DNA from: Selaginella moellendorffii | Taxonomy: Eukaryota > Plantae > Lycopodiophyta | Reading direction: 5' to 3' | DNA length: 64,000 nucleotides | Assembly: GCF_000143415.4 (NCBI RefSeq) | Contig: NW_003314269.1 | Span: forward strand, 2,301,544-2,365,543 | Shown here: piece after piece, positions 6,840 to 16,707 of the stretch | Position numbering within the stretch: position 1 is the first letter of the stretch | How the letters are laid out: each line of letters opens with the position of its first letter | Made by a program: the position numbers and the translations under genes | The notes under the pieces: model-generated | The model's input: only the letters and a program-made list of their open reading frames with translations | Database searches by the model: none | Told to the model about the DNA's origin: nothing

Positions 6840-7940
6840 CTCATGTACTTGCTCCTGGGATCCATTCCACTCATTGTAGCTGTTCCTCAAGACCCACGAT
6901 GCCGCATTCACTAGTTAGCAGGCCACCCAGGGTGGCCGTTGAGATCTCCATGTACAACTTCAAGAGCTTATCTTACTTGGAGGGTGAGTACAAGAACATT
7001 CGAAGGATGTGCTCCATGGAGCTCTTCACGGTCAGGAGTGTCACCTCCTTCACCAAACCAAAATCATCTGGGACGAGCTGTGGGAGCTCACTGCCAAGCA
7101 CGCCAAGGCTATCAACCAGTGGCATTGCAAGGGAAGTTGAGATCACTGGGCTTCAATGTTATGACCCACATCCTCATGAACAAGACTTACTTTTGATCCA
7201 AGACTTCTGGTGATGATCCAGAGGCGCGGTATTTTGTGGAGTCGCGGTGTTCTCCATAGCAAATTATTTCCCCAGATGGAGCATAGCCTGCTGGAAGATG
7301 GATGCGTTCCTGGACAATGTTTTGGATGAGCAAAGATCTGGAGAAATTCCAGACTTTGTGGAAATGACAAAGGTGCGAGTCAACGGCCCCGACCAGACCC
7401 AGAGTCTGCCAAGTGAAAACTCTTTATTAATCGAGCTAAGTCTCTCTTTGCTCGCCTAGGATTTACTTATTGGTGGCTCGGAGACATTGTTTGACCGTGA
7501 TTGAATGGGCTATGGCCTAGCCTCTTCACAGTCCTGAATGGATGCAAGAGACTGAAAGTGCGGTGAATGGTGGAGGAGTCCGACTTGGGAACCTGTAATC
7601 AAGGAGACATTTCCGCTAGCGCTGCTGATCCCACACACGTTCCCGGAGCCTCGACTAGTTGCAGGCTTTGAGATTTCAGCAAAGGCGACAATGCTCATCA
7701 ACAGGAAGGGTTTCCCAGGCCCGGCCAGATCCGGAAATGTTCAAGTCTGGGAGGTTGGTTGATAGCAATATCAGTTTACCACGACTTTGAGTTGCTTCCT
7801 TTCGGATCTGGAAAGTGAGCTTGCCCTGGACTTCCTCGTCCAAACTTGATCCATGGGGTGGAGATTTGCGGATGGAGGCACAAGGAAGTCCTCCTTTGAC
7901 AGTGGCCCTGGATTGATTGATACTCTTGCGAATGCTATTG
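6840..7940 (+). pseudogene. Cytochrome P450 (A-type, CYP71 clan) pseudogene
   Basis: ELFTVRSVTSF, EQRSGEIPDFV and DLLIGGSET are present. The heme motif is broken by a stop (LLPFGSGK*ACPG, ~7791-7830) and there are several frameshifts. Paralogous to 24045-25130 and 36490-38122. Confidence 0.85.
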
Positions 7941-8198
7941 TGGCCCATGTATCCCCAAGACTTTGGACTCTTTCAGCTTCGTAACTTAATTAAACTACCT
8001 AAGGGAAAAAATATATTCTCTTACTTTCAAAGAATATGCTATGAGTTATTTGATTCCAAGGGAATATATCTGTCTTCGTTGTCGTCGTGGCCATCGTCGC
8101 GGGATTGCGTTGCGCGGGGATGATCTCGTCTTCTCTTCGGCAATCGACAGGAATGTAGCGGAGCAGTGGGAGTGCGTGGCGCTGCGTCCCCGAATTCT

Positions 8199-8213
8199 CA
8201 GGGTTTAGGGTTT
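8199..8213. promoter_or_regulatory. Telo-box (AAACCCTA-type) tandem just upstream of the CPN60 ATG
   Basis: CAGGGTTTAGGGTTT. Similar motifs precede other housekeeping genes (12763, 13650, 38414). Confidence 0.55.
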
Positions 8214-8216
8214 ATC

Positions 8217-10906
8217 ATGTACAAGGTAGCCGGCGCCTTGATTTCCAGGTAAGCAACTGGAGATTTCGTTCCCGCTGAGAGCTAACGAAATTCTCTCGCT
8301 GCTGGGTTGCTAAGATCCAAGACACAAGCACAGGTAGGTTTGTTTCCCTCAATTTTTCTTTTGCTATCTTAGATTTTTTGTTGTTTCATCGTAGTTCCTT
8401 GCGAGACACTATGGACTTATCCCCAAGAACACCAAGTATGGTGTGGAGGCGAGATTACTTATGCTTCAAGGTGTCCAGCAGCTCGCGGATTGTGTCAAAG
8501 TCACAATGGGTCCAAAGGTAGAAAAACAGAATTTCTGGAGTGTAGGATTGTCATCGTTCGTTCATCTGATACTTGAAATTGCTAGGGAAGAAATGTGATC
8601 ATCGAGCAAGATAAGTATGGACCTCCCAGAGTTACCAAAGACGGTGTCACGGTTGCCAAGGCCATTGGTTTCAAGGATAAGATGAAAAACGTTGGAGCAG
8701 ACCTTGTCAAGCGCGTGGCAATATCAACTAACGATGCTGCTGGAGATGGTAAGTTTTCGATCGATGTTTTTTCTTTTTTCATTCGCTTCACAGTGATGGC
8801 GTTGCAGGGACGACCCTTGCCACGGTTTTAACGCGTGCAATCTTCACCGAGGGCTGCAAATTGGTGGCTGCTGGCATGAACGCAATGGAACTCCGTCGTG
8901 GTATTAATCTAGCAGTCGATCACGTGGTATTTCATCTTAAAAATCGGGCTAAGATGATCAGTACTTCCGAGGAGATTTCACAGGTTTGTGCTGTGCTTCC
9001 TTTTGGCTTATGTTCGTAATTCTTGCGCAGGTCGCGACTGTTTCGGCAAATGGTGACAAGGAAATTGGCGATCTGGTTGCTAAAGCTATGGAAAGAGTTG
9101 GCAAGGAGGGATTGATCACTATCTGGGTACTAGAACAGCTTCCTACATGGTTTTTTCTGGCTTTAACATTTCATTTCGCAGGATGGTCAAAAACTCCATA
9201 ACGAGCTTACTGTTGTCGAGGGGATGGAGATAGACAAGGGATATATATCGCCATACTTTGTCACCAATGCAAAGACGCAAAAAGCGGTATGCGAGTCTTG
9301 CTGGCTGGAACCTGCTTGATTTGCCGAGCTTTTGCAGGAGTTTGAAGACGCATTGATTCTCCTCCATCCTGACAAAATTTCAAGCGCACAGAAACTTGCA
9401 CCTGTGCTTGAGATCATCAAGAAGGTAGTTCTAGTTCATTTGGATCCGTCTTTCTATGCCTGGTCTCAAAATGACTGCTTCTTCAGCTTCAAAGGCCTCT
9501 ACTTATTATTGCTGAAGATGTGGAAGGCGAGGCTTTGGCATCTTTAGTCGTGAATAAAATGCGGGGTGGACTCAAGGTATGAGAATCTTCTTCTGTTTGT
9601 TTGTTATTTTTTTCTTCTCTTCTTTTCTAAACGTCGAGCTTTCAGGTAGCTGCCATCAGATCCCCAGCCTACGGTGAAAATAGGAGAAACACTCTGGAGG
9701 ACATCGGTATTTTGACCGGTGCACAAGTAAGCTGTTACTTCACGGCTTGTCATGTGGTGTTCGAACCAAATTTGTGGCAGCTAATCACAAACGAGATGGG
9801 GTTGAAGCTTGAGGATGTTCGTGTTGATATGCTCGGAACGGCAAAACAGGTCCGTTGCTCCAATGGTTTGAACTTGCGGTAAACCGATCTCTCAGGTGAC
9901 AATTGCTCAAGAAGACACCATTATCCTAAATGGAGGAGGCGACAAAGCAGCCATTGAAGAGCGTTGCGAGCAGGTTTTAAATATGAAAACAGTTCGTGAC
10001 GATGGTCTTAATGCTTCTATTTTCTCAGATCCGGCTAGAAATACCTGTTGCGATTTCCAAGTACGACAGGGAAAAGCTGGAGGAGCGTTTGGGAAAGCTA
10101 TCCGGTGGAGTGGCCATGTTAAAGGTGGAAGCATTTTGCTATTCGTGCGTCATTTATCTGATGCTGTGCCAGGTTGGGGGCGGAAGTGAAGCAGAAGTCA
10201 TGGAAAAGAAAGACCGCGTGATGGATGCGCTTAACGCAACAAACGCAGCGATAGAAGAAGGCATTGTTCCTGGTAAGCAACCACCGATGCTTTCATTTTA
10301 TACTCTCACTATGTTTAGGAGGTGGAGTTGCATTGCTCTATGCGGCTAACGAGCTAAAAAACCTCAGTGTACCAAGCTTTGATCAAAAGATCGGAGTTCA
10401 AGTCATCCAGAACGCTCTAAAGGTTCGTGATTTAAAAAGAAAACAAGCTCTCGAATATCAATTTTTTAATTTCTTCTGCAGATACCAACGCACACAATCG
10501 CTGCAAACGCTGGCGTCGAAGGCGCTCTGGTGGTGTCCAAGCTTCTCGAGCAGAGCAGTCCAAACTTTGGTTACGATGCTGCCACAGGTAAAAGACGCTA
10601 TTTACTCCTGTGGTCTCGCGTTTTAAGGGAGTTTTTGATGGAAACCAGGTGAGTACGTTGATATGATCAAAGCCGGGATTATAGATCCAGTGAAAGTTAT
10701 CAGAATAGCTCTCATGGATGCTGCAAGGTACTTTTTTTTTTCTTTCCAGAAAGCTTGGCTTATGTCGCGTTTTTTTATCCAGTATCTCGTCACTGCTAAC
10801 AACAACGGAGGTGGTGATAACCGAGGTTTTCAGGGAGGAGAGAGAGGCGATGCGCGCAGGGATGGAAGCTCCGCAAGGAATAGGCGACATAGCACAGTAC
10901 TTGTGA
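8217..10906 (+). CDS. CPN60: Mitochondrial chaperonin 60 (GroEL/Hsp60), multi-exon
   Basis: ATG at 8217 ([11 protein letters not shown] presequence-like). Spliced exons give [71 protein letters not shown]. Stop ends at 10906. Confidence 0.95.
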
Positions 10907-10965
10907 TCTCAAAAGGTGAAAGTTTTCTTGCCTTGTAAACTTGAGAGGTTTTGTTCCATTATTAC

Positions 10966-12753
10966 TTACGCAGCAACAGCCGCTTTCTCGTCCCTGTTCG
11001 TGAAAATGTTAAACAGTCTGGTAATCTCCACTCCTCTCGCCTTCACTTCTCCTCCTTCCGGCTTCTTCTGGTTGAATTTCTCCTTGTCACTTCTTCGTTT
11101 CTTCAAGCTGTCTTGATCGAATTTGTCAACTTTAGCTTTCGAGACTGTTTGATCCAGCTTGGCATGGCCTACTTTAACTTCCGGTGCTTCTGATCTCACT
11201 CCCAGCTTCCGGCTGTTCATCCTTAGTGTCTTTTTCGCAGCGTCTTCACCACTAGCTCCTGTTTGATCCATCTTAGTCGCACCTTTCCACTCGTTACGTG
11301 ATCTTCGATCAGCATACCACCTCGTCCTCCGCAAGGGAACGTCACTGAGCTCACATCCTTTACCACCAGCGTCCAAGCTCGCCTTGTTCATCACCTCCCA
11401 CTCTCGCCTCCTCGCCATCTCCCTCACGCTCTCCCGGGCGCTCTTCTGCCGTGCCACCTCCGCGTCGATCTCCTCGGACCACTGCGGCATGGCCGCCTTC
11501 ATCTCCTCCACCCAGGCCTTCTGCTTGGAGACGCTGTCGTGTATCACCACCGTCTTCTTGATCATCCCAGGCACGGGAATGTATCCCATGATGATCCGCA
11601 GGAAGATCTTGAGCTGCGGAGTCCGGAGGTGGAGCCGATAGTACCACTTCTCGACGCGGCTCCTCCCCCACAGCCGATCAGCCCGGTGGAGGCACACCAC
11701 CTCCGCCTCCACCTTCCACATAACTTTGAGGTATTTCTGGATCATCTCCACCGACTGTTTGTCAAACTTGTCCAGGATGATCCGGCCCTTGGTCCCGCGA
11801 GCGATGATACTCCCGCGATCGCACCACCACACCGCCAGCGACACCGGCGTCATGTGGTTGAGCCACTTCCGCTTCACCACCGTGTGGTTCTTCCAGCAAG
11901 TCATGTGGTGGAAGTCCCGGAACTCGGGCACCGGGACCGTCCGGAACTCGAGCTTGTCGGCCCGGGTGCCAAAAGAGTGCTCGAACGCCATCTCCTTGAA
12001 CTGCTCGGCCTTCCAGTCGAAGTACTCCTTGTTCATGGCGTGGTTCCGGAAGAACAGCACCGCGGCGTCGGGGTACTTGTCCCTGTCCACGAAGAGATTG
12101 CCGTGGCCGAGCAGCGAGCCGAGGAGAACCGAGCGTACCATCTCCGAGACGTCCACCGTCTGGAGGAGCTTGAGCGCCAGGTTGGGCGCGTGAGCTCCGC
12201 CACCTATTGGAAGAACGTTGCTCGCCATGTTTGGCTTCCTTCTCTTGGAGTTCTCGTGGCTTCTCATGAGCGAGCGAACCTCCCATGGCAGGCTCTCCCG
12301 CTTGGCCAGTGGAGCGTTCCTGGCTTTTCGAGCCATGCGGTGTGGAGCGTGGATCCTGGCTGGGCCGACCCTGTGCCCGAAAATCCCAGTCTTGGTGGGC
12401 GACTTGAAGATCTCATACTTGTAGTTGTAGAGGCTGGCTTTGAGCAGGGATGGATGCTGGCCGGGCGGGAAGCAGTATGATGGAGTGTGATCTTTGGGAG
12501 CTGGCGCTGGCGCTGGAGCTGGAGCTGCACTGGATTGATTTCTTCCAGTTACTGGATCCCCGGACGATGAAGCTGGAGCTGGATTGGATTGATTTGTTCC
12601 AGGTGCTGGACCTTTGGACGATGAAGTGGAGTTTTTCTGAGAAGAAATTGCTGGATACCTGGGACTAGCCGCCGACGAGCACATCATCCTCCCAAGGAGC
12701 TTCCAGTGCGGGCCGGTAGCCTCGCCGGATCGCAGCGATCGCAGCGAGATCAT
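10966..12753 (-). CDS. Intronless nuclear protein with an I-SceI-type (LAGLIDADG_2) domain and a predicted organellar targeting leader; catalytic residues altered
   Basis: 595-aa ORF. Motifs VLLGSLLGHGNL and HMTPVSLAVWWCDRGS match the I-SceI-type motifs ILGDAYI and LTPMSLAYWFMDDGG. The N-terminus is R/S/L-rich, followed by a S/P/A linker. Confidence 0.8.
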   Translation of the reverse strand: MISLRSLRSGEATGPHWKLLGRMMCSSAASPRYPAISSQKNSTSSSKGPAPGTNQSNPAPASSSGDPVTGRNQSSAAPAPAPAPAPKDHTPSYCFPPGQHPSLLKASLYNYKYEIFKSPTKTGIFGHRVGPARIHAPHRMARKARNAPLAKRESLPWEVRSLMRSHENSKRRKPNMASNVLPIGGGAHAPNLALKLLQTVDVSEMVRSVLLGSLLGHGNLFVDRDKYPDAAVLFFRNHAMNKEYFDWKAEQFKEMAFEHSFGTRADKLEFRTVPVPEFRDFHHMTCWKNHTVVKRKWLNHMTPVSLAVWWCDRGSIIARGTKGRIILDKFDKQSVEMIQKYLKVMWKVEAEVVCLHRADRLWGRSRVEKWYYRLHLRTPQLKIFLRIIMGYIPVPGMIKKTVVIHDSVSKQKAWVEEMKAAMPQWSEEIDAEVARQKSARESVREMARRREWEVMNKASLDAGGKGCELSDVPLRRTRWYADRRSRNEWKGATKMDQTGASGEDAAKKTLRMNSRKLGVRSEAPEVKVGHAKLDQTVSKAKVDKFDQDSLKKRRSDKEKFNQKKPEGGEVKARGVEITRLFNIFTNRDEKAAVAA

Positions 12754-12908
12754 TCTCCCCTTAAACCCTAGCTAAAGCCCTGGATCCTGGAGATCACGAA
12801 TCCACAAGCCGCATCCAAATGTGACATTGCGATCGCGTCGATTCCGCGCCTCGCCGCCATTGCTAAAGATTTCTAGGGTTCTTGAGCAAAATATTTTAGG
12901 GATCTTGG
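12754..12908. promoter_or_regulatory. 155-bp putative bidirectional promoter with telo-boxes
   Basis: Head-to-head ATGs at 12753(-) and 12909(+). AAACCCTAG at ~12763 and CTAGGGTT at ~12873. Confidence 0.6.
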
Positions 12909-13469
12909 ATGGATCCGGGGTATGGCGACTCGCTGCTCATCCTCGCCATCGCCTTCGCCTCCGCGTGTATCTGCGAGGGGATCTCCTGGCTCCTGATCTA
13001 CCGCTCCTCCTCCTACAAGGCGCTGCGCTACACCATAGATCGCACCAGCAAGAAGCTGGAGACGATGAAGAGCGGCGGGGGAGGCGCCAAGAAATCCTCG
13101 CGCACCAAGAAGATGGATCGATTCGAGTCGAGCCTCAAGGAATCGAGCAGGGATCTCTCCTTTTTCAAGTTCAAATCCGGCGCCGTCGTGGCGCTCGTCT
13201 TGCTCGTCGTGTTTGGCCTCCTCTCGTCGCTCTTCGAGGGCAAGCCCGTGGCGAAGCTCCCATTCGCGCCGTCGCCATTCATCCAGAAGATGACGCACAG
13301 GGGCCTGCCCGGCGACGATCCCACCGATTGCTCCATGGTCTTCTTCTACTTCCTCTGCTCGGTAAGCATCCGATCCAATCTCCAGAAGCTGCTAGGGTTC
13401 GCTCCCCCGCGCGGCGCCGCTGCCAATGCCGGGATGATGTTCGCTGCTCCCGATCCGAAGGCGCGGTAG
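12909..13469 (+). CDS. TMCO1: TMCO1 / DUF106 (EMC3/Oxa1 superfamily) ER membrane protein, intronless
   Basis: EGISWLLIYRSSSYK, LFEGKPVAKLPF, HRGLPGDDPTDCSMVFFYFLCS, QKLLGFAPPR are characteristic of the family. Confidence 0.92.
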   Translation: MDPGYGDSLLILAIAFASACICEGISWLLIYRSSSYKALRYTIDRTSKKLETMKSGGGGAKKSSRTKKMDRFESSLKESSRDLSFFKFKSGAVVALVLLVVFGLLSSLFEGKPVAKLPFAPSPFIQKMTHRGLPGDDPTDCSMVFFYFLCSVSIRSNLQKLLGFAPPRGAAANAGMMFAAPDPKAR

Positions 13470-13761
13470 TAATGGATCGATCGATCGCTCTTGTGTTCTT
13501 GATTAATCCTCTAGTTCTTCCTCGATTCAATGTGTTCTTCCATGGAGGACTCTCTCGAAAATTCCTAGAAGAGGAATCCTAGTGTGCTATGCCACGTGGT
13601 GTGTGTTTAGAGGCCACGATTGTAATAAAGCACCGCGCCGTCTCTGTTCTAGGGTTTTCATTTGGAGGCATTAACGTGTGAGCGGCGCTTGGAGGGCGCT
13701 CTGGGAATTAGGGTAGGCGATGGCGCGCTAGGGCTGTGAATCAAGGAAGGCGCGCGCCGGC

Positions 13762-16707
<2,946 letters not shown>

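Follow-up and report, generated by a model that had tools for sequence, protein, structure and literature searches.

The window analysed, a 64,000-nucleotide (nt) stretch of the Selaginella moellendorffii genome (assembly GCF_000143415.4, contig NW_003314269.1, positions 2,301,544 to 2,365,543), contains an intronless nuclear gene for a LAGLIDADG protein in which both catalytic aspartates of the family have been replaced. The nearest relatives of the protein include homing endonucleases encoded by group I introns of the small subunit (SSU) rRNA gene of streptophyte mitochondria. The gene and its parts, with amino acids (aa) numbered from the start codon and coordinates from the first letter of the window, were the following:

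10966..12753, minus strand: complete intronless open reading frame (ORF) of 595 aa plus stop; stop codon at 10966-10968, start at the first ATG downstream of an in-frame stop
12619..12753, minus strand: putative organellar presequence, aa 1-45 (MISLRSLRSG...), recognized by composition and without a homologue
12229..12618, minus strand: low-complexity linker rich in Ser, Pro and Ala, aa 46-175 (15% Pro, 12% Ala, 12% Ser)
11404..12228, minus strand: double LAGLIDADG domain, aa 176-450, with a C-terminal helical extension specific to the subfamily; homologues were found for this part
11695..12135, minus strand: match to Pfam LAGLIDADG_2, aa 207-353 (E 3.7e-25, 89.3 bits, profile positions 1-150 of 168)
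12103..12105, minus strand: codon CAC of His217 at the catalytic Asp position of motif 1 (LLG-H-G), placed by the family alignment
11815..11817, minus strand: codon CGC of Arg313 at the catalytic Asp position of motif 2 (WWCD-R-GS), placed by the family alignment
11404..11571, minus strand: helical C-terminal extension, aa 395-450, common to the SSU-rRNA-intron subfamily according to the alignments
10969..11403, minus strand: basic charged tail, aa 451-595, rich in Lys, Arg, Glu and Asp (14% Lys, 10% Arg, net charge +11)
10781..12882, minus strand: transcribed span in RNA assemblies, its 3' end overlapping the 3' end of the convergent Cpn60 gene

A first-pass annotation, made from the letters of the window, had described an intact, intronless ORF of 595 aa within a block of housekeeping genes. 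Both statements agreed with the present data: the ORF check found the frame complete, and the genes adjoining it were Cpn60 and EMC3/TMCO1. RNA contigs assembled from four public runs of four different studies covered the whole ORF without a joint (X4 record 10, positions 10781-12794; X9 record 17, positions 11019-14003). The RNA contigs skipped ten GT..AG introns of 46-69 nt in Cpn60, with the joints between positions 9422 and 10781, and as these introns had been spliced out, the runs are RNA. Because contigs that splice Cpn60 traversed the ORF without any joint, the gene is nuclear, expressed and intronless. It is located on Mb-scale scaffolds between Cpn60 and EMC3/TMCO1 with neither a group I intron nor an intein around it, so that also the earlier statement that no such host element surrounds the ORF held. 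The G+C content of the gene is about 0.51-0.58, while that of the Selaginella mitochondrial DNA (mtDNA) is 68% (PMC5654404).

The public assembly GCA_000143415.2 has the gene on two scaffolds, of which GL377573.1 is identical to the window and GL377565.1 is the other, and on both the gene order was protein kinase, EMC3/TMCO1, LAGLIDADG gene and Cpn60. We take these scaffolds to represent the two haplotypes of S. moellendorffii. The copy on GL377565.1 has kept the reading frame and encodes 592 aa, all insertions and deletions (indels) being in-frame. The public gene models are shortened to 248 and 253 aa (approximately aa 176-440), and the RNA together with both haplotypes supports the ORF of 595 or 592 aa. 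The public records name members of the family only as 'hypothetical' or 'LAGLIDADG domain-containing', and the literature search found no paper describing the family.

The composition of the parts outside the domain agreed with the leader, the linker and the charged tail of the first-pass annotation. Residues 1-45 include 24% Ser, 9% Arg and a single acidic residue, giving a net charge of +5. An exhaustive HMMER search against 1.84 billion representatives gave no relatives of the linker (aa 46-175). Neither this search nor the alignment gave homologues for the tail (aa 451-595), which was found only in the Selaginella lineage.

In the Pfam search the protein was assigned to LAGLIDADG_2 (PF03161) with a score well above the cutoff of 25 bits. 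No second Pfam family was found at E ≤ 10, and hence no pentatricopeptide repeats (PPR), in accordance with the earlier annotation, and no WhiA or helix-turn-helix (HTH) match. The NCBIfam search of the protein gave no match, the single-sequence search of the PDB produced only noise, and a feature-based atlas search returned LAGLIDADG_2 and nothing further. When the family profile was compared with the PDB, it matched the homing endonucleases I-WcaI (6x1j, E 4e-13) and I-SceI (E 1e-6). The AlphaFold2 model of aa 176-450, based on the family alignment of 103 rows, reached a pLDDT (predicted local distance difference test) of 92.9 and a pTM (predicted template modelling score) of 0.90. It predicts a pseudo-dimeric alpha-beta fold with two LAGLIDADG helices. 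The best Foldseek matches of the model were again I-WcaI (6x1j) and I-SceI (1r7m), with E about 1e-9 and target TM scores of 0.70-0.72, and WhiA and further LAGLIDADG proteins were among the lower-ranked matches. In the model the helices at domain residues 220-274 lie outside the I-SceI fold. The extension at aa 395-450 reads QQRWISEMKxALPQFSxxID in the family and QKAWVEEMKAAMPQWSEEID in the Selaginella protein.

The two I-SceI-type motifs of the first-pass annotation were found where it had placed them, with the codons of His217 in LLGHGNL (motif 1) and Arg313 in WWCDRGS (motif 2). In the profile alignment, LGDG of the family corresponded to LGDA of I-SceI and WxDDG of the family to MDDGG, and the aligned residues of I-SceI are presumably Asp44 and Asp145. 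The column of motif 1 had Asp in 97 of 101 rows, the Selaginella protein being the only one with His. In the column of motif 2, Asp was present in 94 of 103 rows and Arg in the Selaginella protein alone. The replacement of the metal-binding Asp residues by His and Arg, already noticed in the annotation, was thus evident both in the alignment to I-SceI and within the family. A total of 71 positions were at least 85% conserved in the family, and of these the Selaginella protein retained 43 (61%) and had changed 28, compared with a median of 97% and a minimum of 77% retained in the relatives. The annotation had also regarded the rest of the domain as intact, which applies to the predicted fold and not to the conserved positions: according to the model the fold is retained, while the active site and many of the conserved positions surrounding it have been lost. 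As both catalytic acidic residues are missing, it is proposed that the protein cannot cut DNA.

The variation within the species was distributed unevenly along the gene. The two haplotypes differed by 11 synonymous and 12 non-synonymous substitutions (pN/pS 0.32), besides indels that were in-frame only. When the haplotype differences were pooled with the variants present in the RNA assemblies, the core (aa 200-420) had five synonymous and no non-synonymous variants, and the leader, linker and tail together had 14 non-synonymous and nine synonymous variants. The linker contributed five non-synonymous and three synonymous variants as well as in-frame indels of 9 nt, and the tail nine non-synonymous and six synonymous variants and an in-frame indel of 3 nt. 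If 22-30% of the sites are synonymous, the chance of finding no non-synonymous variant among five is approximately 0.0005-0.002, a figure of hand arithmetic on small counts. The absence of non-synonymous variants from the core, set against five synonymous ones, indicates that the core is under purifying selection, and that the tails are only loosely constrained.

A word-indexed search for homologues, run with the full protein and again with aa 195-430, gave no relatives. The exhaustive HMMER search gave 284 matches, all inside aa 171-458, and the best of these beyond the fragments of the plant itself were 37-43% identical. Five clusters of nuclear genes, here called the nuclear clade, were detected among the best 150 matches, which included none from seed plants, Physcomitrium or Marchantia. 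Also the short phmmer matches were checked as further land-plant orthologues, and none of them was nearest to the nuclear clade. The clade includes, besides the Selaginella gene, Sphagnum proteins (P0002; S. fallax, S. jensenii and S. balticum) of 423-453 aa, encoded on chromosomes of 31-34 Mb and therefore nuclear. The remaining three clusters, P0003, P0004 and P0007, probably represent mosses. The contigs of P0004 and P0007 (L001 and L012) have a single GT..AG intron at a common site just after motif 1, in phase 1 between LRILK G and ENDAR (positions 2057-2229 of L001 and near 870 of L012). Transcript L011 of P0003 represents the spliced form of this intron, so that these genes are nuclear as well, and P0007 adjoins an alpha-kinase gene. 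The Sphagnum and Selaginella genes have no intron. The N-terminal extensions of the Sphagnum and P0003 proteins are basic and not homologous to the Selaginella leader.

The motif-2 residue of the five nuclear proteins is never Asp, being Arg in Selaginella and Glu, Ala, Ala and Ser in the others. The motif-1 exon of P0007 was not recovered, and among the other four proteins the motif-1 Asp is kept in Sphagnum, in P0003 and in the upstream exon of P0004 in L001 (LGSLLGDGHL). Judged from these residues, the nuclear proteins would form a graded series from a possibly active Sphagnum protein (D/E) through half-dead ones (D/A, D/S) to the fully dead Selaginella protein (H/R).

The profile search added organellar proteins of Coleochaete, Nitellopsis, Chara and Gonatozygon together with many from the candidate phyla radiation (CPR/Patescibacteria). 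The subfamily is abundant in CPR/Patescibacteria (e.g. P0259, P0260, P0291, P0303), which provide the next relative beyond the streptophyte organellar clade, and these members presumably sit in 16S rRNA introns. OTP51, a plant protein in which a LAGLIDADG_2 domain is joined to PPR, was absent from the best 150 matches (E ≤ 2e-6), where no protein of the PPR-LAGLIDADG type was found and the only long proteins were inteins. Two long matches, P0136 and P0137, had been considered as kin of OTP51, and both proved to be inteins. As no other long proteins are present among these matches, OTP51 is probably much more distant than the SSU-rRNA-intron subfamily. The sequences thus support that the gene is not a fragment or a truncated form of OTP51, the two being set apart by distance only and not by a joint tree.

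All the maximum likelihood (ML) trees, i.e. a quick one, a careful one (LG+C20) and a careful one with the moss mitochondrial pseudogene described below added, united Selaginella, Sphagnum, P0004, P0003 and P0007 into one clade. The support of this clade was 99 in the quick tree (SH-aLRT, Shimodaira-Hasegawa-like approximate likelihood ratio test), 99/92 in the careful tree (UFBoot, ultrafast bootstrap/SH-aLRT) and 92/92 when the pseudogene was included. Within the clade Selaginella branched first, then Sphagnum and then the remaining three. The nuclear clade joined the intron ORFs of Chara, Nitellopsis, Coleochaete, Gonatozygon and Closterium, with the ORFs of CPR 16S introns further out. The wider streptophyte grouping had an SH-aLRT support of 97 in the quick tree and only 74/88 and 62/35 in the careful ones. 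Descent of the gene from the subfamily encoded in the SSU rRNA introns is well supported by the sequences, and the organelle-to-nucleus transfer was probably a single, old one shared by the nuclear clade. The first-pass annotation had suggested an independent transfer: the organellar intron origin was upheld by the trees, the gene is not private to Selaginella and forms a clade with nuclear genes of Sphagnum and other moss-like lineages, and its independence from OTP51 is a matter of distance.

The exact site of the source intron was read directly in two algal contigs, L004 and L007. In Closterium (L004) the ORF, at positions 8001-8969, lies inside an intron at 7872-8989, and in a second alga (L006/L007) it lies inside an intron of approximately 2.1 kb. 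In both, the upstream exon ends with ...GGAUUAGAU (also given as ...AAACAGGATTAGAT), the last base of the intron is G, and the downstream exon begins with ACCCUGGUAG (also given as ACCCTGGTAGTCC). These exon junctions place the intron after U793 of the SSU rRNA (E. coli numbering). The 5' ends of the introns are alike and the introns homologous. The gene orders, rns, tRNA-Met, tRNA-Met, rnl in one case and rnl, rrn5, rns in the other, together with the rRNA scores make the contigs look mitochondrial.

A group I intron of the mitochondrial 18S rRNA gene, rrnSi839g1, is listed only for Selaginella and Isoetes (Hecht et al., PMC5654404). It is listed without the mark of an ORF, the Selaginella version is eight times larger, and the last nucleotide of the 5' exon needs C-to-U editing for P1 (PMC5654404). 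The rrnS intron of Isoetes has a length of 237 bp (PMC2731911) and that of Selaginella roughly 1.9 kb, and Huperzia has no group I intron (PMC3325193). According to a 2026 paper that cites Liu et al. 2014 (PMC13662536), rrn18i839g1 is present in Sphagnum palustre, Atrichum, Tetraphis and Buxbaumia and absent from the derived mosses. Site 839, which follows Marchantia numbering, would correspond to U793.

A scan of metagenomes for the junction pattern gave 31 matches, mostly chance ones. Seven contigs had an intron start of the moss type (L022, L026, L029, L030, L034, L038 and L041), and four of them, L022, L026, L030 and L038, were characterized further. These four have features of land-plant mitochondria, including group II introns, rrn5, tRNAs and a conserved U encoded as C. 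L030 derives from a contig of 141,455 nt and L038 from one of 110,731 nt. A single rrn18 intron of 1,174 or 936 nt is present in the moss-like contigs at the U793 junction, beginning with AGATCCGGCCGGGCTCTAAAT as compared with AGATCCGGCCATGCTCTAAAA in Closterium, so that its 5' end resembles those of the algal introns. In L030 and L026 the downstream exon has ACCCCGG in place of the universal ACCCUGG, which may represent a C-to-U editing site of the rRNA.

The intron of the moss-like contigs includes a LAGLIDADG reading frame that numerous stops, frame changes and deletions have turned into a pseudogene. Profile positions 19-253 were recognizable over two frames in one contig, and only pieces in the other. 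The ORF of the moss intron has thus decayed, and the presence of a nuclear copy goes together with a dead ORF in the intron itself. When the moss nuclear genes and the moss mitochondrial contigs were compared by metagenome sample, the samples differed. The nuclear gene was found only in Selaginella, Sphagnum and the three moss-like lineages.

These observations lean, if only slightly, towards a reading in which the gene is a nuclear descendant of the U793-intron ORF, and its product now a maturase acting in trans on the ORF-less rrnS intron. According to this reading the source was the homing-endonuclease ORF of the group I intron after U793 of the streptophyte mitochondrial SSU rRNA gene, an intron that would be the rrnSi839g1 or rrn18i839g1 of the plant mitogenome papers. 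A copy of the ORF would have moved to the nucleus and then gained an N-terminal presequence. In the Selaginella lineage both metal-binding Asp residues (now His217 and Arg313) would have been lost, many of the residues facing the nucleic acid changed and the basic tail gained. The protein would be imported into mitochondria by means of its leader, bind the RNA of the ORF-less intron and aid its folding and splicing, yielding mature 18S rRNA, and the basic tail may contribute a general affinity for RNA. The splicing role is suggested by the co-occurrence of the nuclear gene with rrn18i839g1, as reported in PMC5654404 and PMC13662536, and by the decay of the intron's own ORF. More tentative, and falling somewhat short of an even chance, is the broader view of an ancient land-plant nuclear family that is kept only where the intron survives and that has become a dedicated maturase for mitochondrial ribosome biogenesis in lycophytes and early-diverging mosses.

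Several observations weigh against this reading. To our knowledge, no protein of the LAGLIDADG_2 (I-SceI) type has been found to act as a group I maturase. The leader is rich in Ser and could equally be a plastid transit peptide. An orthologue in Isoetes, which the reading leads one to expect, was not seen in the searches. In the moss-like contigs exon 1 has a length of 726 nt from the start of the Rfam model, not 839, and the Rfam group I model scored the moss intron at 16 bits, below the threshold. In the tree including the moss mitochondrial pseudogene, this grouped with Zygnematophyceae, outside the nuclear clade. The Selaginella protein has a deviating composition and a branch approximately four times longer than its kin have, which makes its position in the trees less secure than the support values suggest. 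The approximately unbiased (AU) test did not reject a topology in which the moss mitochondrial pseudogene is joined to the nuclear genes of mosses and Selaginella stands outside (p 0.31).

The last two points speak for the possibility that the same intron ORF was transferred separately in Selaginella and in mosses, and that the grouping of the nuclear genes is an artefact of fast nuclear evolution. The N-terminal extensions of Selaginella and Sphagnum cannot be aligned, and also the gene structures differ, being intronless or with one intron. This would, however, leave unexplained why the ML trees unite the five nuclear genes with supports of 92-99 in the order of the species tree, i.e. lycophyte, Sphagnum and other mosses, and why the motif-2 Asp has been lost in all five proteins. 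Separate transfers are considered rather unlikely, and the function could even then be the one proposed above. Less probable again is a common origin followed by a different task, in which the nuclease-dead protein would bind DNA or RNA in the organelle with a target other than rrnS: the two mitochondrial cox1 group I introns, one of them trans-spliced, group II introns, or the control of mtDNA transcription or recombination in the manner of WhiA. A new ligand would fit both the basic tail and the 28 changed positions out of 71, far more than in the nuclear kin. The structural matches include WhiA, a transcription factor with a dead LAGLIDADG domain, the Selaginella mitochondria hold further group I introns and an unusually high number of recombination repeats (PMC5654404), and the example of OTP51 demonstrates that group II splicing can make use of a LAGLIDADG_2 domain (PMC9275481). 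On the other hand, the nuclear gene was detected only in lineages that PMC5654404 and PMC13662536 report to have the rrn18 intron, the loss of the ORF from the cognate intron coincides exactly with the existence of the nuclear copy, and the Pfam search found no HTH or added DNA-binding domain.

Two further explanations appear very improbable, and to the same degree. A decaying, transcribed relic of a recent insertion of mitochondrial DNA into the nucleus, without any function, would agree with the loss of both catalytic residues, the many changed positions, the fast-evolving tails and the shortened public gene models. Such a relic would hardly have kept a frame of 595 codons intact in both haplotypes and four RNA assemblies with in-frame indels only, a core free of non-synonymous variants and a confidently predicted fold. 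The added leader, the housekeeping neighbours in the nucleus and a G+C content different from that of mtDNA speak against it as well, and since the nuclear kin are at most 43% identical, the gene is old. The protein could alternatively still be an endonuclease using other residues, or a nickase, homing or cutting mtDNA from the nucleus. The Sphagnum orthologue, with D and E at the two positions, could be active, and the other moss-like members keep the motif-1 D, the residue that a nickase would need in monomeric LAGLIDADG enzymes. In Selaginella, however, both metal-binding positions are non-acidic, the replacements by His and Arg are unique among the 103 members, and also adjacent conserved residues have changed.

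The flanking genes are closely packed around the LAGLIDADG gene. Cpn60, on the plus strand and with more than ten small GT..AG introns, has its last exon ending at approximately 10940, facing the LAGLIDADG stop codon. RNA contigs join the ends of the two genes (10781-10968), so that the 3' untranslated regions overlap as natural antisense. On the other side lies the divergent EMC3/TMCO1-like gene (12909-13469, plus strand), whose start codon is only 155 nt away from that of the LAGLIDADG gene, and the overlap of the RNA contig ends of the two genes near 12871-12882 suggests a shared bidirectional promoter. Further along the plus strand, an ORF of 271 aa at 13762-14577, rich in Arg, Ser, Asp and Glu (RS/RD repeats), resembles a splicing or RNA-binding protein of the SR type, and the RNA contigs skip a GT..AG intron at 14538-14593 in this region.

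Compared with known systems, the nearest to the Selaginella protein are the ORFs of the U793 introns (Chara, Coleochaete, Closterium; 16S introns of CPR), with 33-43% identity and a common extension of the QQRWISE type. These are intron-encoded, 250-320 aa long, have both Asp residues and retain approximately 97% of the conserved positions, whereas the Selaginella protein is nuclear and retains 61%. I-SceI and I-WcaI share with it the Pfam family PF03161, the two-lobed fold predicted for it and two LAGLIDADG helices at the same places. The Selaginella protein differs from them in having His217 and Arg313, in being encoded by a free-standing nuclear gene instead of an intron, and in the added leader and linker of 175 aa, helical C-terminal extension and basic tail of 145 aa. 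WhiA is likewise a domesticated, nuclease-dead LAGLIDADG scaffold and a structural match, but it binds promoters and has a C-terminal HTH, while the Selaginella protein has no Pfam match to WhiA or HTH. I-AniI and the yeast proteins bI3 and bI4, bifunctional or maturase-only proteins of fungal mitochondria, are of the LAGLIDADG_1 type. They bind their cognate group I introns and assist in their folding, the maturase activity having no need of the nuclease residues (PMC9275481), and unlike the Selaginella protein they are still encoded by introns in the organelle. OTP51 (Arabidopsis At2g15820; moss PpPPR_7 and PpPPR_22) is nuclear and targeted to organelles, and it has a degenerate LAGLIDADG_2 domain and a role in intron splicing (PMC2758277, PMC9275481). 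It differs from the Selaginella protein, which is without PPR, by its 7-10 PPR repeats, by its action on group II introns of the plastid and by its conservation among seed plants. The nuclear maturases of plant mitochondria, nMAT1-4, offer a parallel in history, as the gene of an intron protein has moved to the nucleus and its product acts in trans on ORF-less organellar introns (PMC8393795), but they originate from the reverse-transcriptase maturases of group II introns and the Selaginella gene from a group I LAGLIDADG endonuclease.

The takeover of splicing helpers by the nucleus is well known for group II introns through nMAT1-4, and for LAGLIDADG proteins only through the PPR fusion OTP51. 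New in the present case are the group I intron as the source, the stand-alone protein without PPR, and the possibility of identifying together the intron that donated the gene, its decaying copy in the organelle and its descendant in the nucleus. Both Selaginella and a transformable moss lineage would allow a direct test of how a ribozyme and the protein that escaped from it have co-evolved, here in an essential rRNA gene. The graded loss of the catalytic residues provides a natural experiment on the passage from homing endonuclease to RNA cofactor. If the proposed role is true, it would explain how ORF-less group I introns, down to 237 nt in Isoetes, can be spliced, and the gene would represent a group I counterpart of the history known from nMAT1-4.

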